DNA from: Callorhinchus milii
Taxonomy: Eukaryota
Reading direction: 5' to 3'
Assembly (NCBI RefSeq): GCF_018977255.1
Contig: NW_024705144.1
Span: 1-64,000, forward strand
DNA length: 64,000 nt
Of the stretch, positions 9,433-44,217 are shown piece after piece. The notes beneath the pieces were generated by a model. The model searched no databases. It was given only the letters and a program-made list of their open reading frames with translations, and was not told where the DNA came from. A program made the translations under genes and the position numbers. Numbering within the stretch: position 1 is the first letter of the stretch; each line of letters begins with the position of its first letter.

Positions 9433-9548
9433 GTGAGTGCTATTATTCTGACAGTCTCACTCTTCCTGTGTCGGTCTTATTCTCTCTGCAATGTCACAGA
9501 GACGGGAGGTTTCACAGTCATTAATCTTCGGTCATTTATTCTTTACAG

Positions 9549-9854
9549 GTGTCCAGGCCGAGGTGGTGCTGACACAGCCGCCGTCTCTAACCGGGAAACC
9601 TGGCCATCCCCTGAGACTGACCTGTAAAACCAGTGGGTTTAATCTCGGCAGCTACTGGATGAGCTGGGTCCGGCAGGTTCCCGGGAAGGGGCGGGAATGG
9701 CTCCTCAGTTATTACAGCTCATCCTACAAAGCTTTCGCGCCTGGGATTGAAGACCGTGTCACTGTCATCAAAGAGAATTCCAATAACATCTTCGATTTGA
9801 TCATCAAAAGCCCGAGAGTGGACGACACCGCCATCTATTACTGTGCGAGAGGGT
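9549..9854 (+). CDS. IGHV: IgH VH exon, open and unrearranged
   Basis: Acceptor tttacAG at 9547-9548. Translates as (R)[55 protein letters not shown]...[10 protein letters not shown] with both Cys, the FR2 Trp and YYC. Confidence 0.97.
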
Positions 9855-9893
9855 CACAGTGAGAGGAAACGGGGCTGAACTCCTACAAATACA
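9855..9893 (+). other. VH 23-bp-spacer RSS
   Basis: CACAGTG at 9855-9861, 23-bp spacer, ACAAATACA at 9885-9893. Confidence 0.93.
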
Positions 9894-32015: not shown

Positions 32016-32595
32016 CTCCCTCCCTCCCTCCCTCCCCGGGGACTGCCCTCAGGGCAGGGGCAGGAGGCTGCGGTTGGTGGGACGCAGCGCTGGGAGTGGG
32101 AATGATAACCTGCTGTGACTGCCGTCTGTCAGGAAGGCGATCCTTATCCACCGCCTCCTGTCACTGCACAGAGTGGAGCCCTCTGTAGCTCAGTGGTTAA
32201 GAGGACTCGCCTTGTAATCATAATAATAATAATCCTTGCATTTGATATAGCGCTTTTCACGTCGGGAGGACGTCCCAAAGCGCTTCACAGAACACACTGT
32301 AAAGTGAATTGACTGTATATTCGTGGGTGAACGCGTCAGCCAATTGCGCACAGCAATGTCCCAGAAACATTAAGTAAAAGTAAGGAGAGGCCCTGGGTTC
32401 GATTCCCGACCGGGACGGCCAAATGTTGGGCAAGTTCTCATACTCCACACACACGGCTCTGTTTACCGGCAGTCAGGAGGAACCAGGTTGTTAGTCGATT
32501 GGTGGATGGCTTTTCCGGGGGTAATGATCCCTTCAAAAAAATTTCAAAAAAATAAGTCACTCAATCCACGACAGTTTGTGGGACGCTGCTGTGCA
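30375..32595. repeat. Long inverted repeat (arms about 30375-30770 and 32010-32595)
   Basis: 30415-30572 is an apparently exact reverse complement of 32379-32540, and 30571-30765 is near-identical to the reverse complement of 32012-32216. Confidence 0.85.
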
Positions 32596-33682
32596 CAGTT
32601 GGCTGCCATGTTTCACCCAAAAAATGTACAGTCACTTCACTTTACCGTTCATTCTGCGAAGCGTTTTGAGACGTCTCAAAGACGTGATAAGGCGCTGTAT
32701 CAAATGCGAGGATTATTGTTATGCTGTTATGGTGACCCGCGGCTCCCGCCGCTGCACATGGTGACCTGCCGCCGAAAGAAAGAGGGAAAGAGAGAATTTA
32801 GGTGAGGGAGAATTTATGTGAGAGAGGGAACGAGCCAGTGTGCGTGAAAGAGGCAAAGGGAGAGGGTGGGAGACAGCGATTGAAAAGAACGATTCACAGA
32901 AAGGGGAAGAGAGTGCGTATGATCAAGAGAAGAGAAGCAAGAGAGAGTTTGTCAGGGAGAGAGTAGGGGGAAGGGAAAGAAAGTGAGGGAGGGAGGGAGG
33001 GAAGCAGAGCTAAAGTAAGAGAGGTTGAGATTGTGAGAGAGGAGAGAGTGTGTATGGGAGAGAAGTGGAGTGATGGAGACTACTTGAGGTGGTGGTGGGG
33101 GGGGGGGAGAGATTGATTTTTTTGGTCCGCCTCGTGCTTAAGAGTCTCCGAGCCGGGCTTAGATTTCCATGCATCGCACCTACGCGAGAAAAAATCCCAG
33201 AGATAGAGAGTTGGAACGGAATTCGCACTCTCTCCCTGGAGGATCGCATCCTGTTTATCCAGTTCCAGAGAGTATTACTGACATTTGTGCAGCGCCTTTC
33301 ACATCGGGAGGACGTCCCTAGGCGCTGGACAGTCGGGGATTTGGACCTGAGAGGGAGGGGTTGGCATCAGGGAGTGAGGAGAGCAGGGAAATGAGGAGGG
33401 TGGCCAAAGGCGCGGTCGACCAGGAGGGTCTTGAGACGTGCCTTGAAGGAGGCAATGGAGGGAGCGAGCCGAAGGGACTACACTGAACCTAGCGGGTTAA
33501 TATAAAACAGACACCTGACTCTCTAATCACTAATTGACGTTCTCTAGTTTATTTCTTCGGTCTCTCTCTGTCTCTCTGATTGACAGATGTCCAGTCTCTC
33601 TCAGTCTCTCTGTCTCAGCCTCTCTATCTCAGTCTCCTGTCTCAGTATCTCCCTTTGTCTCTCTTTCCCCCTCTCTCCCCCG

Positions 33683-33770
33683 TCATTGCATACTCGCTCT
33701 CTCGTTCAGTTCATAAAACAGTAAATAGGCATCGCTGGACACTACACTGTGCGGCTGAATCTGTGATACT
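33683..33770 (-). CDS. USP21: USP21-like exon 12 (VSQIQPHSVVSSDAYLLFYELNERASMQ*)
   Basis: AYLLFYE C-terminal USP motif, TGA at 33683-33685, AATAAA on the - strand at 33548-33553. The 12 exons total 1710 nt (569 aa plus stop). Confidence 0.93.
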
Positions 33771-33989
33771 CTGTTTTGGGGGGAAAAGAGACAGAGATAT
33801 AGCCAGAGATTCACACAGCCTCTCCCTCACACACACACACAAAGCTCCCTCTACACTGTCTACACTCCTAGGTCACGGTTAGAGACACAGTAAAACTCCC
33901 TCTACATTGTCCGTCTACACTCCCAGGTCAGGTTTAGAGACACAACTCCCCCTACACTGCCCTCCACACTCCCAGGTTAGGCTTCGAGA

Positions 33990-34405
33990 CAATAACAACA
34001 ACAAAATTACATTTATAGAGCACCTTTCACATCGGGAGGACTCCCAAGGCGTTGGTTTTGGACCCAAGCTGGGGGTCGCGATTGGGGACGGTGAGGGGGG
34101 AAAGGAGGGTGATTAAAAGCACAGACGTAGAGGAGTGTCTTGAGATGGGTCTCGAAGGAGGCGAGGGAGGAGACGAGGTGGAGGGACTGCAGGATGGATT
34201 TCCAGAGTGTGGGGGCAGAGTGGCTGAAGGCCGGCCCGCCAATGGTGGGGTGGGCGAGGTGGGGGATGAGAAGCAGACCTGAGCCGAGCCCGCTAAGCGG
34301 AGGAAGTGGGCAGGATGGTAGGGGGTTAGGAGGTTGCAGAGGTAGGGGGGAGCAAGGCCATAGAGGGCTTTGAAGGTGAGGACCAGGAGGAGTTGGGGAG
34401 GCCAA
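33990..34405 (-). mobile_element. L2 LINE 3' fragment in the last USP21-like intron
   Basis: LTFKALYGLAPPYL and the L2 tail. Confidence 0.75.
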
Positions 34406-34464
34406 GTTAGAGTTTGCATAGAGACACAGTAAAGTTCCCTCTACACTGTCTGTCCTTGGAGAGT

Positions 34465-34950
34465 CAGGAGATGGATTCTACTATACAGAGCCTTGGTCAG
34501 ACTCCATCTGCAGTACTGCGTTCAGTTTTGGGCACTGCATCTCAGGAAGAATGTATTGGCTCTGGTGGGGGTGCAACTCAGATTCACCAGAATTATACCA
34601 GGGCATAAAGGTAGATACAGAGAAACTGTTTCCTCTGGCGGGGGGAATCCAGAACAAGGTGGGGCATCATCTTAAAATTAGAGCCAGGCCATTTATGAGT
34701 GAATTCAGGAGGCAGCTTTTTCACGCAAAGACTGGTGGAAACCTGGAACTCTCTCCTTCTCCCAAAAGGCTGTGGATTGTGGTTGGATCTTCAAGACTGA
34801 GGTGGATAAGATGTTTGTTAGGTCAGGGTATCAAGAGATACGGGGCAAGGGTGGGTAATTGGACCTGAGGTATAGATCAGCCATGATGTTACAGAATGGC
34901 GGAAGAGGCTCGAGGGGCTGAATGGCCTCCTCCTCTTTCTATGTTTCTAT
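34465..34950 (+). mobile_element. CR1 LINE 3' fragment
   Basis: LYRALVRLHLQYCVQFWALHLRK...EKLFPLAGG and the GCTGAATGGCCTCCT 3' end. Confidence 0.8.
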
Positions 34951-35137
34951 GGATTTAGATGTGAGAGGGTGATAGATAGAGACTTCAGGGAGTCGGGAAA
35001 TGGATTGAAGTGAGGGTTATAGACCCAGTAAAAGTTAGAGAGAGGATAAAGGGAGGGTGGGGAGGATAGAGAGAATGGAAAGGATAGAGAGAATGGGAAA
35101 AGATAGAGAGAATACAAATTAATTAATTAAAACTCAC

Positions 35138-35252
35138 TCAGTGTTGCTAAAGTTGAGCCAGACAGAGTGAGATTTGCAGGAGGCTGTGTAATATCCACCG
35201 TGTACTGTCCCCGTGTGATTACACACCGCAAACAGGTCATACATCATCACGC
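35138..35252 (-). CDS. USP21: USP21-like exon 11 (His box, degenerate: CNHTGTVHGGYYTASC...WLNFSNT)
   Basis: AG/GT bounded, 115 nt. Aligns without gaps to CNHSGSVHYGHYTALC...WHVYNDS. Confidence 0.92.
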
Positions 35253-35585
35253 CTGTAACACACAAACCACAAACAGGTCATACATCATTACACCTGTAAC
35301 ACACAAACCACAAACAGGTCCGTAACATACACACACTACAAACAGGTCATACACCATCACGTCTGTAACATACACCCACCACAAACAGGTCATACATCAT
35401 TACACCTGTTACACACAAACCACAAACAGGTCATACATCATCACATCTGTAGCTCACAAATCACAAACAGGTCATACATCATCACGCCTGTAACATGTAC
35501 ACACCACAAGCAGGTCATACATCATCACGCCTGTAACATGTACACAGCGCAAACAGGTCATACATCATCACGCCTGTAACATACA
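35229..35585. repeat. 41-43 bp minisatellite built from the exon 11 acceptor and first codons
   Basis: AAACAGGTC recurs at 35230, 35271, 35312, 35340, 35383, 35424, 35465, 35508 (variant) and 35551. Confidence 0.92.
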
Positions 35586-35775
35586 ATAATAATAATGACA
35601 GTGGTTACACACAGTAAATAATGGGTGAAAGCGGGAGGTTGTGATGAAAGGAAGAGAAGGAGGGAATGAGGTAGTGAGGGGAGAGAGGGAATGAGGCTGT
35701 CAGTGAGGGAATGAGTGTGCAAGGGATGGAGGGAGTCTGTAACAGGAGGTATAGATGATGTAGTGAGTGACTAAC

Positions 35776-35880
35776 CTCTGGGAGAGGAGGAGTGAGAAAG
35801 GCTGAAGTTATTGACAGGAAAATCCACAAACGTTAAACTTTTCTTGACGGTGAAACGAGTCTTTGAGAATCGATTCAGGT
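35776..35880 (-). CDS. USP21: USP21-like exon 10 (HLNRFSKTRFTVKKSLTFVDFP...)
   Basis: Matches HLNRFSASRGSIKKSSVGVDFP; AG acceptor with a TCTTTAAC branch site; donor GTTAGT. Confidence 0.92.
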
Positions 35881-36239
35881 CTGAGACGGAGTTAAAGACA
35901 AATATTCTCCTCCTTCCCTCGTTCCCTCTCCCCTCCTCCATCCCTCAGTCACTCCCTCAATCACTCTCTCTGAGGTAGTGTTAATGAGATACGTTCATCT
36001 CTCTAAATATCTCTCTCAATCCCTCTCTCTCTCTGAGCCGGAAGTTAAAGACAAATATTTATCTCCTCTCTCCCTCATTCCCTTCNNNNNNNNNNNNNNN
36101 NNNNNNNNNNNNNNNNNNNNNNNNNNNNNNNNNNNNNNNNNNNNNNNNNNNNNNNNNNNNNNNNNNNNNNNNNNNNNNNNNNNNNNNNNNNNNNNNNNNN
36201 NNNNNNNNNNNNNNNNNNNNNAGGGAGATAGAGGTAGGG

Positions 36240-36520
36240 AGTAGCGTCCTATAGCTCAGGGGTTACAGCACTCGCCTTGCAAGCGACAGACCTGGGTTCT
36301 ATTCCCACCAGGGCGAAATGATGGGGAAGTTTCCTTACTCCACACACTCCTCTGTTTGGCCAGCAGTAAGAAGTAACCCGGATGTCAGTCGATTGGCGTA
36401 TCACTTTTCCGGGAATAATAATCTCTCCCCAAAAAAATAATAATTTGGTTACTCAACCTACGACTATTTGTGGGACGCTGCAATGCGCAATTGGCTGCCG
36501 CATTTCGCCCACATATTATT
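36240..36520 (+). mobile_element. tRNA-derived SINE (3' truncated)
   Basis: Same family. Confidence 0.75.
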
Positions 36521-36819
36521 ATTGTCTCTCTCTCCCTCCCTCCCTCCCTCTATCTCTCCCTCCCTTTATCTCTCTCTCTCCCTCCTCTCGCTCCTTCCCT
36601 CCATCTCTCTCTCCCTCCCTCCATTGCTCTCTCCCTCCCTCCATCACTCCCTCCCTCCCTTCATTGCTCTCTCCCTCTATCTCTCTCTCCCTCCCCCCAC
36701 CTCTCCCTCCCACCATCTCTCCCTCCATCTCCCTGATCCGGGATTTATTGAGTCAAATTCACCTCCTTCTCTGTCGATCTCTCGTTCTATTTCTCTACCT
36801 GTGAGCCAGGAGCTAAAAA

Positions 36820-37230
36820 TCATACAATCATAGCATGACACAGCACAGAAGGAGGCCATTCGGCCCATCGTGTCGGTCTTTGAAAAGAGCCATAGCCCGT
36901 AGCCCTGCAAACTTGTCCTCCCCAAATAATTATCTACTTCTCTCTTAAACGTTATGACTGAATCGGCTTCCGCCGGCCTTTCAGGCAATGATTCCAGATC
37001 CCAACAACTCTCTGTGTGAAAGCATTTCTCCTCCCGCCCCTCCCGTTTCTTTTAACAACTATTTTAAATTGTTGCCCTCGGGTTCCCGACCCGCCCGCCA
37101 GTGGGAATAGTTTCTCCCTGTTCGTCCTATCGAATCCCCTCATCATTTTGAAAACTTCTATTAACTCTCCTCTTAACCTTCTCTGCTCCGCAAGGAGAAT
37201 AATCCCGGCTTCTCCATCCTTTCCTAAAGC
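36820..37230 (-). mobile_element. CR1 LINE 3' fragment inside the U12 intron
   Basis: MRGFDRTNREKLFPLAGGSGTRG...FTQRVVGIWN. Confidence 0.8.
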
Positions 37231-37663
37231 GAAATATTTATCTGCTTCTCTCTCTCTCCCACACTCCCTCTCTCGCTCTCAGTTTCTCGCTCCCTCATTC
37301 TCTCACTCCCTCTCTCGCTCTCAGTCTCTCGCTCTCAGTCTCTCACTCCCTCATTCTCTCACTCGCTCTCTCGCTCTCAGTCTCTCGCTCTCAGTCTCTC
37401 GCTCTCACTCTCTCACTCTCTCTCTCGCTCTCAGTCTCTCGCTCCCTCACTCTCTCGCTCTCAGTTTCTCGCTCCCTCATTCTCTCACTCCCTCTCTCGC
37501 TCTCAGTCTCTCACTCCCTCACTCTCTCACTCCCTCTCTCGCTCTCATTCTCTCGCTCCCTCACTCTCTCACTCGCTCTCAGTCTCTCTCCCTCATTCTC
37601 TCATTTCTTCTCTCGCTCTCAGTCTCTCTCCCTCACTCTCTCACTCCCTCACTCAGAGGATAT

Positions 37664-37742
37664 GAAGAACAAGAATCTTGGGGAATCTGTGTATTGTTAA
37701 TTTCTTTGTACTTTGCTTCCTCTGCCGGCAGCGATCACACGT
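37664..37742 (-). CDS. USP21: USP21-like exon 9 (TCDRCRQRKQSTKKLTIHRFPKILVL)
   Basis: AG acceptor, second CxxC; ends at an ATATCCTCT U12-type donor. Confidence 0.92.
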
Positions 37743-38014
37743 CTAAAGAGAGAGAGTATGTGAGAGAGAAAGAGACTCAGAGAGAAAGAGACTGAGGAAG
37801 AGACACAGAGAGAGAGACTGAGAGAGAGACTGAGGGAGAGAGAGACTGAGGGAGAGACACTGAGAGAGAGACAGAGAGAGGCAAAAATAGTGAGAGTGAG
37901 AGAGACGGAGAGAGGAGAGACTGAGAGAGACACAGTGAGAGAGAGAGAGAGAGAGAGAAAGAGAGGGACGAAGATAGTGAGAGTGAGAGAAACGGGAGAG
38001 AGAGAGAGACTGAC

Positions 38015-38098
38015 CGACTCATTATCTGAATCCAACTCCTGACGGGTGAAGAGATGAAAACAGTCCGTGAGAGAGATTTTACTCAAATCTGAAGGTTT
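38015..38098 (-). CDS. USP21: USP21-like exon 8 (KPSDLSKISLTDCFHLFTRQELDSDNES)
   Basis: AG/GT bounded, 84 nt, phase 0. Confidence 0.9.
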
Positions 38099-38490
38099 CT
38101 GTAACTTAATGANNNNNNNNNNNNNNNNNNNNNNNNNNNNNNNNNNNNNNNNNNNNNNNNNNNNNNNNNNNNNNNNNNNNNNNNNNNNNNNNNNNNNNNN
38201 NNNNNNNNNNNNNNNNNNNNNNNNNNNNNNNNNNNNNNNNNNNNNNNNNNNNNNNNNNNNNNNNNNNNNNNNNNNNNNNNNNNNNNNNNNNNNNNNNNNN
38301 NNNNNNNNNNNNNNNNNNNNNNNNNNNNNNNNNNNGTATGTGTGACTGTGTCTGTGTGTTGTGTGTGAGTGTGTGACAGTGTTTGTGTATGTCTGTGTGT
38401 GAATGTTTATTGTCTGTGTGTGAGTTGAGTGTGACTGACTGTGTCTATGTGTATTTGTGTCTGTGTGTGAGTGAGTGTGAATGTGTTTAC

Positions 38491-38594
38491 CTTAGGAATG
38501 GGCAGAGACAGATCGGAAAATACTTTGAACTTAGTTGATTTATTCCCACAAGCGAAACATCGTAAACTACTTTTTAATTGTCCGACAAAGAGAT
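38491..38594 (-). CDS. USP21: USP21-like exon 7 ([16 protein letters not shown]...DLSLPIPK)
   Basis: AG/GT bounded, 104 nt, first CxxC of the finger domain. Confidence 0.95.
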
Positions 38595-38842
38595 CTGAGA
38601 GAGAGAGAGAGTGAGAGAGCTTTACTATCTCTCTAACTAACCCTCACCTGGAAGTGTGGACACACAGTGTAGAGGGAATATTGTTGTGTCTCTAACCCTG
38701 ACCTGAGAGTGTGGACGGACGCACAGTGTAGAGGAGCTTTACTGTTATTGTAAAGTGAATTGACTGTATATTTACTGTGTCTCTAACCCTAACTCAGGAG
38801 TGTAGATGCACAGTGTAGCGGGAGCGGTATTGTCTCTCTCAC

Positions 38843-38907
38843 CAACAATTTTGCTGTTGTCAGTCTCTGAGTATTGTTTCCACAGCTCAATTGACTTTTC
38901 ATCATCA
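38843..38907 (-). CDS. USP21: USP21-like exon 6 (DDEKSIELWKQYSETDNSKIV)
   Basis: AG/GT bounded, 65 nt. Matches DDDRANLMWKRYLEREDSKIV. Confidence 0.92.
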
Positions 38908-39164
38908 CTAGAAGAAGACAGATGAGGTGTGATAGGGGCGAAGGAAGAGAGAGAGAGCGATGCAGGATGATTACGAGAATGTGAGAGAGGGATAGAGAGG
39001 TGGATGAAAAGAGTGTGAGAGGGACAGAGCAAGAGAGAGATGGAGAGTGTGATAGAGTGTGGAGGGAGAGAGAGACAGTGAGATGGAGAGAGTGAGAGTG
39101 CAGAGGTAGAGAGAGAGGGATGGAGAGAGCATGAGGGAGACGGAGCGAGAGAGAGAGAGATGAC

Positions 39165-39302
39165 CTGAGTCTCTCTAGTCCCTCTGCTGTCAGCCGTCTG
39201 CGCAACTCCCAAACAATATCTGGAGTTTTGTGTCGTTTGCGATTGATTTCAGTGTGAAGTCCCTCCATCAGCAGGCTCAAAAACTCCTGGGCGTCCTGCT
39301 GG
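39165..39302 (-). CDS. USP21: USP21-like exon 5 (QQDAQEFLSLLMEGLHTEINR...)
   Basis: QQDAQEF box; AG/GT bounded, 138 nt. Confidence 0.94.
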
Positions 39303-39304
39303 CT

Positions 39305-41600
39305 AGAGAGAGGGAACGAGAGAGCAGAGAGAGCGAGATATTGAGAGAGAGATTCAGAGACGGAGACAGAGAGAGAGACTGAGAGAGAGAGAGAGAGAGG
39401 GAGACAGAGAGAGAGATTGGGAGAGAGAAAGACCGAGAGAGACAGTGACTGGGAGAGAGATTGGGAGAGGGAGAGATAGGCAGAGAGAGAGAGGGAGAGA
39501 TAAACAGACTGAAAGAGAGTAGAGACTGACAGAAAGAGAGACTGCGAGACAGATTGAGACTGAGAGAAAGACTGGGAAAGAAGAGAGTGAGGGACAGAGA
39601 GCGAGAGAGACTGGGAGAGAGAGAAAAAGACTGCGAGGGAGAGAGAGAGAGAAAAAGACAGAGAGAGATAGACTGAGAGAGAGAGAGAGAGAGAGGGAGG
39701 GAGAGACACTGACAGAAATAGAAACTGAGAAAGAGGGATAGAGAGAGAAAGAGAGAGACTGAGAGACATGTGTGCATGCGACCGCCAGGAAGATGGAAGG
39801 CTTTTTTCATCTAGCATTTCTTATGAGAGAGAAAGACTGAGAGTGACAGAGACTGAAAGAGAGAGAGAGAGGGAGAGAGAGAGACTGCGGGAGAAAGAGA
39901 GAGAGAGAAAAAATATTGGGAGGGAGAGAATGAGAGAGACAGACAGACAGACAGACAGAGAGAGAGAGAAACGAGATTGCAGGAAAGAGGCAGAAAACAA
40001 GACAAAGAGCAAGTGAAGAGAGAAAGAAAGAGAGCGAAAGAGCGATGGAGAGTGAGAGAAAGAGACACAACCGAGAAAGAGTGAGCGAGATCCAGAGAAA
40101 AGGTGAAAAAGAGAGAGAGAACTGGAGAAAGAGAAAGGAGAAAGAGATGGCGAGAACTGGAGAAAGAGAAGGAGAGAAAGAGGACAACAGAGAGAGACAG
40201 AAAACGAGCGAAAGAGAGAATAAGCACAGTACAAGAGTTGGAGTAAGAGAGACAACGAAAGAGCATGAAAGAGAGAGAGAGAGATAGAGAACGACAGAGA
40301 AAGACCCACTGCTGCACTCACTGATCTGAGAGAGAGAGAGAGTGCACGGGAGAGAACAAGAGAGAAAAAAAATTAGAAAACCAGAGACAGAGGGAGAAAG
40401 AGAAGGATAAACAGAGAGATTGAGAGAAAGAATGACAGAGAAAGAGAGGTTAGAGATGGAGAGAGCCTCCCTCCAGCGGTCACTGACCTGAGAGAGAGTG
40501 GAACACACTGAGAGAGATAGAGGGAGAAGGGGTGGGGAAAAGAGATACGGAGCATTGGATAGAGAGAGAGAGAGAGACAGAGAGATGGGGGGGAGAGAGA
40601 GAACATGGGATAGAGAGAAAGAGAGCAAGAGAGAGAGAGGGGGACACAGAGAGGGTTGGAGAAAGAGAGAGGGATAGAGAGAGAAAGTGGGAGGGATAGA
40701 GAGATACAGAAAGAGAGGGAGAGAGAGGGGGAGGGCAAGAGAGAGTGAAGAGAGGGATAAAGAGAGATAGAGAAGGATAGAGAGAGACCCTCTCTGGCAC
40801 TCACTGACAACAACAACAACAATTTGCACTTATATAGCGTCCTCTACGCATGGTAGCGTCTCAGAGCGCTTAACAGTGGTGGGCACTGACCTGAGAGAGA
40901 GGGATAGAGAGAGAAAGATGGTGAACGAAGGATAGAGAGGCAGCCTCCCTTCAGCATTCACTGGCCTGAGAGAGGGGTGGGACAGAGAGGGGGAGAGGAG
41001 GGATAGACAGAGAGAGAGGGAGAACAAGAGAGAGAAGGATAGATAGAGGGGGAGAACGAGAGAGAGAGAGAGAGAGGGAGAATGAAAGAGAGAGGGAGAA
41101 CGAGAGAGAGAAGGAGACAGAGGGAGAACGAGAGAGAGAAGTAGACAGAGGGAGAACGAGAGAGAGGGAGAATGAGAGAGTGAAGGATAGAGAGGGTGGG
41201 AGAACTAGAGAGAGAAGATAGACGGAGTGAGAGGGAGAACGAGAAGGATAGAGAGAGGGGGAGAATGAGAGAGTGAAGGATAGAGAGAGGGGGAGAATGA
41301 GAGAGTGAAGGATAGAGACTGTGGGAGAACTAGAGAGAGAAGATAGACGGAGTGAGAGGGAGAACGAGAGAGAGAAGGATAGAGAGAGGGGGAGAATGAG
41401 AGAGTGAAGGATAGACAGCAAGAAAGGGAGAACGAGAGAGAGAGAAGGAGATAGAGAGAGAGAGCCTCACTGACCCGAAGAAAGAGAACGCCAGAGAGAG
41501 AAAACAAGTGAGAAGGATAGAGACAGGCAGAGACAGAGAGGGAAAGAGAGAGAGACAGAGAGGGAAAGAGTAGGATAGAGAGAGAGAGAGAGTCTCACTG
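39305..41600. repeat. GA/CT low-complexity tracts filling USP21-like introns (also 37250-37650, 37750-38010, 43230-43570)
   Basis: Near-pure polypurine on +; these tracts produce the S/L-rich spurious ORFs. Confidence 0.9.
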
Positions 41601-41602
41601 AC

Positions 41603-41714
41603 CTGAAACTGTTGAAGTGAGGAACGCGTTTGTGAAAAACAGCCAAAAAGTTACTGGGAGTCACGGGGTCCGAATTGTGAGGGTCCCAGAGACACACCAG
41701 GAGGTCAGAGAATG
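41603..41714 (-). CDS. USP21: USP21-like exon 4 (AFSDLLVCLWDPH...PHFNSF)
   Basis: AG/GT bounded, 112 nt, phases consistent with both neighbours. Confidence 0.92.
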
Positions 41715-42234
41715 CTGTGAGAGAGAGAGTGAATGTGTGTGTGAAAGAGTGTGAAATTGAGAGTCTGAGTGTGTGCGAAAGAGTGTGTGTGAGAGAGAGA
41801 GTGTGAGAGAGAGAGAGATTGAGAGTGTGTGAAAGAGGGTGNNNNNNNNNNNNNNNNNNNNNNNNNNNNNNNNNNNNNNNNNNNNNNNNNNNNNNNNNNN
41901 NNNNNNNNNNNNNNNNNNNNNNNNNNNNNNNNNNNNNNNNNNNNNNNNNNNNNNNNNNNNNNNNNNNNNNNAGATTGTGAGAGTGAGTATGTGAGAGATT
42001 GTGAGTGCGAGAGTGTGCGAGAGAGCGAGTACGTGTGAGAGAGGGTGAGAAAGAGAAAGTGTGTGAGAGAGGGAGAGAGGTTGTGAGAGTGTGAGTGTGT
42101 GAGGACGTGTGTATGAGTATGAGAGAGCGGGAGTGTGTGCGAGAGAGAGCGAGAGAGTGTGAGTGTGTGTGAGTGAGGGTGAAAGAGAAAGAGACAGAGC
42201 GAAAGAGTGTGATAGCAAGTGTTCGAAAGAGAGC

Positions 42235-42268
<34 letters not shown>

Positions 42269-42574
42269 CAGCGTGAGTGTGTGAGTGTGTGCACTTCTCT
42301 TTCTTCCTCCCTCTGTGTCTCTCTGAGTCGCACTCTCACACACTCTCACCCACACTCTCTCAAAAAAAAGGCACGTACACGCTCTCTCAGTCTCTCTCTC
42401 TTTCTCTCACACTCTTACACTCTCTTGCCTTTTACACACACACTCCGTCACACCCTCTCTCAAACACCCGGCGCTCCCACACATCCGTCTCTTACACGCG
42501 CACTCTCTCTCACACACTCTCTCTCTCGCTCTCTCTGTCTCACATTCTGTCACTCTCTCTCTCTCTCTGGTTAC

Positions 42575-42698
42575 CCTCTATCAGGTCGCTGTGAGTCACA
42601 GCGTTCTGGGTCACATCACTGCGATATTCTCCTCGTAAGCAATATTCCTTCAGGGGCAGCGTGTGACTGAGACACTGAATGACAGCGTTTATAAAGCA
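42575..42698 (-). CDS. USP21: USP21-like exon 3 (catalytic Cys; CFINAVIQCLSHT...)
   Basis: AG/GT bounded, 124 nt. Matches CFLNAVLQCLSSTRPLRDFC. Confidence 0.94.
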
Positions 42699-42884
42699 CT
42701 GTCAATAACAAACCAGTAATCAATAATCAACGCCACAGCGCCCCTCGCACCGCACGCAAATCTCAGAGCTTCACAACACCTCGCACTCACTCACACACAC
42801 AGCACCTCGCCCTGTCTCTACAACAACAAATTGCACATATATAGCTCCATCCACGCAGGGTAACATCTCAGAGCGCTTCAAAGA

Positions 42885-43045
42885 GTGTCTCTAACCCTGA
42901 CCTGGGAGTGTGGACGGACGCACAGTGTAGAGGAGCTTTACTGTGTCTCTAACCCTGACCCGGGAGTGTGGACTGACGCCCAATGTAGAGGAGCTTTACT
43001 GTGTCTCTAACCCTGACCTGGGAGTGTGGACGGACGCACAGTGTT
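42885..43045. repeat. 58-bp tandem repeat (about 3 units); related copies at about 38620-38820 and 33835-33990
   Basis: GTGTCTCTAACCCTGACC starts at 42885, 42943 and 43001. Confidence 0.8.
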
Positions 43046-43148
43046 TTACCGCACGCACATCTCAGAGATTCACAACACCTCGCGCTCACACAGCGGGGGA
43101 GAGAAAGAAAGGAAGAAAAAGAGAGGAAAGAGGGAGAGAAAAGCTCAC

Positions 43149-43202
43149 TGTGTTTCCTAAATTTATAAGTCCAACGTGGCCGCTTCCTACAACCAAATTA
43201 TC
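43149..43202 (-). CDS. USP21: USP21-like exon 2 (DNLVVGSGHVGLINLGNT)
   Basis: AG/GT bounded, 54 nt. Matches the USP21 Cys-box start LGSGHVGLRNLGNT. Confidence 0.93.
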
Positions 43203-43575
43203 CTAAAAAATAATGAGAGAAAATTAACAAAGTCTCTCTCTTTCTCTCTCTCTCAGTCTCTCTTTCAGTCTCTCGATCTCTCAGTCTCTCTTTCTCAGTC
43301 TCTCTTTCTTTCAGTCCCTCTCCCGCAGTCTCTCTCCCTCAGTCTCTCTCTGTCTCTCTCAGTCTCTCAATCGCCTTCTGTTTCTCCCAGTCTCTCTCTT
43401 TCAGTCTCTGTTAGTCTCTCTTTCTCAGTTTCTCTCTCTTTCAGTCTCTCGCTCTCTCTGTCTCTCTCTCCCTCAACCTCTCTCTCTCAATCTCTCAGTC
43501 TCTCTTTCAGTCTCTCAATCTCCGTCTCTCTCAGCCTCTCACCTTCCCTCCCTTCCCTCTCCCTCTCCTTTTCAC

Positions 43576-44217
43576 CGTGTTGATGGAGGCAGTGAGCGAG
43601 TTCAGTTGATGTTTCCTCCCGGGGGGCAGTTCCTGGCTTGACGTCTGGCTGTTGGTTTGACCAGAGCGCTGTGACCTCCCCTCCCTCAGACACCCCTGGT
43701 GCTGCTGCAGGTCCCGGATTTTGGAGCAGGACTCGGAGAGGAGAAGAGAAGGTATTCTCATCTCACTGAGAGCCTTCCCCAACCTGCCCTCGGAGCCGTC
43801 TCTGAGCCGCTGCCTCGGCTTGTCATGAGTTGTACGTCCTGCAGGCCTGGGGGGGTTGTGTCTGGTGGCCAGGCTTCTTTCTTCTGGCCTCTTTTCCTGG
43901 CTTCCCTCAAGCTCAGGCCCCAGGTTTCCCCCTGCCGTTAGGCCTGGTCTAGTGTAAACACTGCCCCCAAGACCTGCCTGTCGGTCTGACCTTGTAGTTA
44001 GGGTTCCCCCAGGACCTGGCACGAACCCTTGCCTCGTCAGTCCCCCCGAAGCCTGAGCCACAGACCCCTTGGGTGGTCTGGAGGGCCAGTGGAGGTCTGG
44101 GGGCCCTAATGGCCCCCGCGGGTCCGGCAGTGCGGTCACAGTAGCCAACGTGGTACGTCTGGATCCGTGAGGTTGAGGGCTGGGGGTGTTCAAGGCCAGG
44201 AGAGAGTGAGGGAGCAT
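43576..44217 (-). CDS. USP21: USP21-like coding exon 1 (214-codon low-complexity N-terminus)
   Basis: Open frame from ATG at 44217, acceptor ccgcAG 20 nt upstream, phase-0 donor GTGAAA. A large Pro/Gly/Arg-rich first coding exon as in USP21. An upstream coding exon cannot be excluded. Confidence 0.75.

Follow-up and report, generated by a model that had tools for sequence, protein, structure and literature searches.

Does the elephant shark, Callorhinchus milii, encode a USP21 that is no longer a deubiquitinase, and, if so, is the protein being kept in another capacity or slowly being lost? The question is raised by a gene in a 64,000-nucleotide stretch of its genome (positions 1 to 64,000 of contig NW_024705144.1; referred to here as the window), in which a USP21 gene occupies 44217–33683 on the minus strand. 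The gene has 12 exons totaling 1743 nt, corresponding to 580 codons and a stop codon, and its frame contains neither an internal stop nor a frameshift. The original prediction for this locus likewise had 12 exons without stop or frameshift, while its length of 569 amino acids gives way to the 580 codons of the rebuilt model, in which the boundary between exons 5 and 6 (LERL|SDDEK) agrees with that of the ray gene (LERM|RDDEK). Judging from the residues at its active site, the product is probably a natural "dead enzyme". The reading favored here, held with about even confidence, is that the gene is a dead USP21 orthologue maintained as a non-catalytic protein.

The critical changes are in exon 11, the His-box exon (35138–35252, minus strand), which encodes VMMYDLFAVCNHTGTVHGGYYTASCKSHSVWLNFSNT(E). 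A TAT codon (35191–35193) places Tyr where the catalytic His (H518 of human USP21) belongs, and the adjacent codons AGC AAC (35143–35148) put Ser in place of the third critical residue, an Asn, and Asn in place of the fourth, an Asp. The YNDSR motif in its entirety reads FSNTE (codons 35153–35139 plus the first base of exon 12), which bears out and extends the earlier finding of FSNT for YNDS (35143–35148). The His box reads GGYYTA, and its scaffold CNHxGxxxGG.YTA is retained. It had been described as a change of VHYGHYTA to VHGGYYTA; the His-to-Tyr replacement (TAT, 35193–35191) stands, and the Tyr-to-Gly replacement does not, the GG being ancestral (VHGGHYTA in coelacanth and lungfish, VNGGHYTA in ray and shark). 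The broken site within a preserved frame thus holds, without Tyr to Gly as one of its three changes.

Other motifs of the catalytic domain are retained, including the Cys box GLINLGNT|CFINAV, the oxyanion Asn five residues before the Cys, QQDAQEF, CFAC, CDRC, and AYLLFY; all of the motifs first listed as kept (Cys box, QQDAQEF, both CxxC pairs and AYLLFY) are present in the rebuilt gene. Exons 3, 5 and 11 match Pfam family PF00443 (peptidase C19), exon 11 with 27.5 bits against the UCH profile and therefore above the gathering score of 23.9. The best solved-structure matches of exon 11 are human USP21 (VHYGHYTA) and then USP2 (GGHYTA), and exon 3, which also has a Pfam UCH match, has human USP21 as its top solved-structure match (E 2e-7).

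The replaced residues are nearly constant in related proteins. Among 148 USP2 and USP21 homologues the catalytic position is His in 146, the other two being one gap and one unalignable stretch, and in none of the 148 is His replaced by substitution; the third and fourth positions are N/D and Asp in 144 of the 148, and the exceptions resemble defective models. Among human USPs, 96% have Asp at the fourth critical position, and the USP1 D752N mutation, the same fourth-position Asp-to-Asn change, nearly abolishes activity; Ser at the third position is tolerated in active USP16, USP30 and USP45 (Keijzer et al., PMC10867860). Because His has become Tyr, Asn has become Ser and Asp has become Asn, the C. 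milii protein should be able neither to deprotonate the Cys nor to resolve the intermediate, and it is predicted not to be a deubiquitinase. In this account the USP fold is retained in full, comprising Cys box and oxyanion Asn, QQDAQEF, the zinc ribbon, the scaffold of the His box and the final strands; what has gone is the general base His, now Tyr, together with its orienting and backing residues (Asn, now Ser; Asp, now Asn).

Predicted inactivity can be wrong, as the case of USP53 and USP54 illustrates, both annotated as inactive and subsequently found active (PMC12037411), and USP39 and USP52 are under reconsideration (PMC10919355). With the Cys and the oxyanion Asn retained, the C. milii protein might be imagined to work by a non-canonical mechanism in which another residue serves as base. 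However, the general base is Tyr together with Asn for the fourth Asp, where the single D752N change nearly suffices to inactivate USP1, substitution of the His is absent from the homologues, and no replacement His is evident nearby in the His-box exon, so that retained activity is very unlikely. The original prediction had also raised an alternative His-box exon, and the window contains no His-box-like exon other than exon 11.

The altered codons are present in independent sequence data. Two individuals (runs X1 and X3) provide DNA contigs that cover 34915–35249 and contain the Tyr, Ser and Asn codons, and every sampled word of exon 11 is found in four more DNA runs (X9, X2, X4 and X25) and in two RNA runs (X7 and X11). 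In a 256-nt RNA contig from run X7, exon 11 is spliced to exon 10 (35776–35880) across the 523-nt intron without a mismatch, and the TAT codon is therefore present in spliced RNA. The words of exon 11 occur in no run of another organism, and runs of relatives (X12–X14), searched at 80% likeness, matched simple repeats only. The region does contain three N gaps and many repeats, as might be expected of an assembly or sequencing artefact, but such an artefact is scarcely credible with the codons in independent DNA contigs of two individuals, the exon 11 words in the additional DNA and RNA runs, and all of the N gaps within introns.

Position in the tree, 12 shared exons and the U12-type intron identify the gene as the USP21 orthologue of chondrichthyans; the earlier designation as a paralogue is not sustained. 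In an IQ-TREE phylogeny of 30 catalytic domains the USP21 clade has support of 100/100 and is sister to USP2, and within it the C. milii protein joins those of ray and shark (83/96), in agreement with the species tree. The 12-exon layout of the ray USP21 gene is identical, with boundaries shared with C. milii. Intron 9 of the C. milii gene (35881–37663) is of the U12 type, as recognized by its donor ATATCCTC and its branch site TCTTTAAC, the latter located 10 nt before the AG acceptor, and it splits the His codon of VLH|LNRF. It has the rare AT...AG ends. In the ray, a U12-type GT–AG intron (GTATCCTTT...AG; ray locus 33328–37482) is situated at the same His codon as the window's ATATCCTC intron, and a human isoform that reads through the U12-type intron starts HILIF, equivalent to CAT ATC CT. 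The intron, being common to C. milii, ray and human, is therefore ancient in USP21.

Database searches identify USP21 in the ray Narcine bancroftii, the shark Mustelus asterias, lungfish, coelacanth, sturgeon, bowfin and teleosts. An exon 7 search of 1.8 billion representatives returned USP21 and USP2 proteins, with no match to the window's own protein. Three protein searches, with snake USP21, a mixed profile and ray USP21 as queries, gave no second C. milii USP21 among the best 120 matches, which is weak evidence for its absence since the window's own protein is missing as well; these matches include only two elasmobranch USP21 species and no holocephalan protein. The dead gene could in principle be an extra copy, with an intact and active USP21 elsewhere in the elephant shark genome. 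This is unlikely, as the locus has the complete ancestral 12-exon structure with the U12-type intron, occupies the tree position that the species tree predicts, and has no C. milii companion in those best-120 lists, and as six DNA runs show the exon 11 words only in this sequence state.

The placement of the elephant shark, ray and shark genes within the USP21 clade implies that the duplication separating USP2 and USP21 predates the split between cartilaginous and bony fishes. A survey published in 2017 placed the origin of USP21, by USP2 duplication, in bony vertebrates (PMC5381560), and the gene thus gets an earlier date than the one given there. The N-termini of the ray and shark proteins share with tetrapod USP21 the MPQ start, RPLPxGPGPLDERGRKL, KRxPxRADH and RSSSLRR. 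In NCBI annotation these two elasmobranch genes go by the names "USP2-like" or "USP21-like". The exons of UFC1 and PPOX, the neighbors in tetrapods, are not found in the window by tblastn with UFC1–USP21 and USP21–PPOX fusion models, and the ray USP21 locus has no called neighbor gene within 10 kb.

Both ray and shark retain GHYTA and YNDSR, so comparison of the active-site residues places the loss in the holocephalan line alone, later than its divergence from sharks and rays. What has happened to the remainder of the protein bears on whether it has been maintained. Of 121 columns that are invariant in 18 other USP21 proteins, C. milii keeps 106 (88%), and most of its 15 changes are conservative: R260K, D261E, G320S, M376L, L381S, D385N, V432I, P452S, Q470H, L504F, Y521F, H534Y, N549S, D550N and S551T. 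All three of the residues designated a priori as catalytic are among these 15, for which the chance is ~0.0016. With the catalysis-specific residues all changed and 88% of other invariant residues kept, an early loss of catalysis with retention of the fold is the preferred order of events; the catalytic pocket would then have drifted freely while the fold remained under selection.

The catalytic exons have pN (nonsynonymous differences per site) of 0.28 and pS (the synonymous equivalent) of 0.82 relative to the ray, synonymous sites being saturated. Selection has acted on these exons over most of the joint history of C. milii and ray; this pairwise comparison, the form taken by the ratio of nonsynonymous to synonymous change proposed initially, reflects that joint history only and is not specific to the C. 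milii branch. In a neutral simulation, reaching 12.4% change at invariant columns (the 15 of 121) requires ~0.063 substitutions per site, and in only 3% of runs was the 580-codon frame left without a stop, with frameshifts and the 22 splice sites not counted. When exon 1 was shuffled, an open frame resulted in only 15 of 20000 cases.

A different account of the same changes is that USP21 is dispensable in holocephalans and is decaying slowly, the catalytic residues having gone first and the remainder wearing away with little or no selection to hold it, the open frame surviving because no hit has reached it yet. We regard this as a serious rival, though the less likely of the two, and several results argue for it and weigh against maintenance. 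From their common node the C. milii terminal branch measures 0.65 changes per site, compared with 0.44 for the path to the ray and 0.33 for that to the shark, a lineage 1.5–2 times faster than the ray. Tajima counts with coelacanth as outgroup are 63 elephant-shark-specific and 33 ray-specific changes (chi2 9.4), and four other outgroups give chi2 of 3.9–11.5. Each of the other USP21 proteins has changed 0–2 columns of its own invariant set, in comparison with the 15 of 121 in C. milii at about twice the rate. The age of the loss is deduced from the sequence of a single holocephalan species. The absence of the window's protein from the three best-120 lists, in which only two elasmobranch USP21 species appear among the matches, also accords with decay.

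The N-terminal region adds to this side. Exon 1 is scarcely alignable, with 22–26% identity to any orthologue compared with at least 31% among the other orthologues. The proline-rich and KKLeLgR region, which in human USP21 is a microtubule-binding motif (PMC3302736), is deleted in C. milii, and KRSSSLRR is lost; of the series MPQ, KKLeLgR, KRGPLKADH, KRSSSLRR and nuclear export signal (NES), only a PQP start and the NES-like LGKALSEMRI are left. The His box itself is polymorphic, a T>A difference on the plus strand at 35189 in run X3 changing TAC to TTC and replacing the Tyr after the dead His, a residue without variation among the aligned active homologues, with Phe. Furthermore, the acceptor of exon 11 has been overgrown by a minisatellite.

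Splicing downstream of exon 11 points in the same direction, at an RNA depth that is low (2–5). The junction between exons 11 and 12 was not seen in the RNA runs at this depth, and by the depth table the X7 contig seems to stop short of exon 12. In run X11, one contig joins exon 11 to an alternative 3′ exon (32642–32765, minus strand) at 32765, with a good acceptor (ctttcggcggcag|GT); this exon substitutes 40 unrelated residues (...ESPCAAAG...NER*) for the last beta-strands. The alternative exon adjoins a tRNA-derived short interspersed nuclear element (32390–32440 region). A further X11 contig joins the end of exon 11 (35138) to the first base of exon 7 (38594), and this back-splice, in which the end of a downstream exon joins backwards to the start of an upstream one, is likely to represent a circular RNA. 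A circle of exons 7, 8 and 11 would measure 303 nt. Finally, the end of exon 8 appears to be joined directly to exon 11 in X11, skipping exons 9 and 10 and running into a stop, on the strength of only 8 letters. The observed junctions beyond exon 11 are thus non-productive, as decay would have it. C-terminally truncated isoforms are predicted in elasmobranchs too: in the ray, isoform X1 is spliced to an acceptor located 16 nt into the last exon (46806 versus 46822 of the ray locus), which shifts the frame and replaces the final USP strands, and shark isoform X2 ends after exon 8.

Against a long neutral drift stand the 580 codons without stop or frameshift and the 22 intact splice sites, including the rare U12-type pair; the lack of a stop alone is a 3% outcome in the simulation. 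The invariant columns are largely kept, with mainly conservative changes, and exon 12 is still close to that of the ray (VVSSDAYLLFYEL compared with VVSSESYLLFYEL). The changes are moreover concentrated on catalytic residues rather than evenly spread. The proposal that the gene is under selection accordingly meets a mixed outcome: the frame, the splice sites and the 88% of invariant columns speak for it, and the doubled rate, the lost N-terminal motifs, the His-box polymorphism and the unseen exon 11–12 junction speak against it. A preserved promoter, also proposed, is not apparent, as there is no CpG island and the observed/expected CpG ratio is 0.36–0.74 around the 5′ end.

Taken as a dead orthologue maintained for its fold, the gene has a kept frame, all of its splice sites and most fold-defining residues, which points to selection on a non-catalytic role. 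That role would most likely be the binding of ubiquitin, ISG15 or an old partner, as a reader, decoy or scaffold. We tentatively suggest a more specific form of this, in which holocephalan USP21 was converted tens to hundreds of millions of years ago into an inactive ubiquitin- or ISG15-binding protein that has been selected ever since. If so, it would be the first natural dead USP21 orthologue, no description of a dead USP21 having been found in the literature, and an example of a deubiquitinase turning into a reader or decoy, with possible action on pathways of the RIG-I and STING type, which USP21 trims in mammals. Pseudo-enzymes are common, most of them being paralogues of long standing; in the present case the general base has gone, and the fold has stayed, in a single lineage of an orthologue whose activity extends from rays to humans. 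Reverting Tyr to His, Ser to Asn and Asn to Asp in this natural experiment could reveal what suffices to switch a USP off or on.

The remaining exons, all on the minus strand, are organized as follows. Exon 1 (43543–44217) contains 225 codons of disordered N-terminal region, in which SPQPHGSRRT, preceded by the ATG 12 codons upstream, corresponds to the MPQP... with which the orthologues begin. Exon 2 (43149–43202) contributes DNLVVGSGHVGLINLGNT, the initial portion of the Cys box, oxyanion Asn included, and exon 3 (42575–42698) opens with the TGC codon of the nucleophile Cys (42698–42696) and encodes CFINAVIQCLSHT... Exons 4 (41603–41714) and 6 (38843–38907) are placed by the gene model and alignment, and exon 5 (39165–39302) encodes QQDAQEF. 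The first zinc-ribbon pair, CFAC, is encoded together with DLSLPIPK by exon 7 (38491–38594), the first base of which serves as acceptor in an RNA contig, and the second pair, CDRC, by exon 9 (37664–37742); exon 8 (38015–38098) lies between them. Exon 12 (33683–33770) encodes (E)VSQIQPHSVVSSDAYLLFYELNERASMQ and the stop codon. Ten introns have GT–AG ends, the exception being intron 9.

The three N gaps are within intron 3 (41842–41971), intron 7 (38113–38335, ending 14 nt short of the exon 8 acceptor) and intron 9 (36086–36221). The exons flanking them are in frame and collinear with orthologues, no residue being missing relative to the USP21 proteins of ray, coelacanth, sturgeon, eel and frog, and no coding piece is therefore hidden in the gaps. 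The minisatellite upstream of exon 11 (35221–35586, minus strand) consists of ~9 copies of a unit of 41–43 nt in which the acceptor of exon 11 (ttacag) is duplicated along with ~30 nt from the start of that exon's coding sequence (VMMYDLF...). The result is a series of decoy 3′ splice sites immediately upstream of the His-box exon. Intron 11 (33831–34985) contains very high-copy repeats, with a summed contig depth of ~390,000 in the DNA runs, that are abundant in the RNA runs as well. An immunoglobulin VH exon (9452–9859; ...YYCAR) is located ~24 kb beyond the 3′ end of USP21 and on the opposite, plus strand, and no link between it and the USP21 gene was found.

Human USP21 (PDB 2Y5B, 3I3T and 3MTN) is the best solved-structure match of each exon tested, and its catalytic domain is ~55% identical to that of C. 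milii. With vertebrate USP21 in general the gene shares its clade, exon structure, U12-type intron, Cys box, QQDAQEF, zinc ribbon and NES-like motif, and differs in its Tyr/Ser/Asn site, the loss of the KKLeLgR region and KRSSSLRR, and its approximately twofold faster evolution. The closest comparison is with the ray and shark genes (Narcine bancroftii XP_069797244 and Mustelus asterias XP_078062102), the sister group of the C. milii gene, which have in common with it the following lineage signatures: GG ahead of the His, CKS and VVSS..YLLFYEL. Unlike C. milii, they have GHYTA, YNDSR and the N-terminal motifs, with 0 of 106 invariant columns changed.

Within the USP family, the C. milii protein resembles the known pseudo-deubiquitinases USP50, USP39 and PAN2 in kind; it has the USP fold and lacks two hallmarks of an active USP, the His and the fourth Asp. 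In USP39/Sad1 and PAN2/USP52, too, a USP fold with an incomplete triad serves as a scaffold (PMC10919355), but both are of ancient origin and conserved throughout eukaryotes, with the spliceosome and PAN3, respectively, as established partners. USP50, a family-wide USP8 paralogue, is dead in every species, whereas the C. milii gene is a normally active orthologue dead in one lineage, with the His lost as well. The closest precedent for lineage-specific loss is FAM105A, an OTULIN-like protein of the OTU rather than the USP family, which has catalytic residues in several vertebrates and not in humans (PMC5381560). Relative to USP50, USP39 and PAN2, C. milii USP21 differs in being a lineage-specific orthologue that is probably dead.

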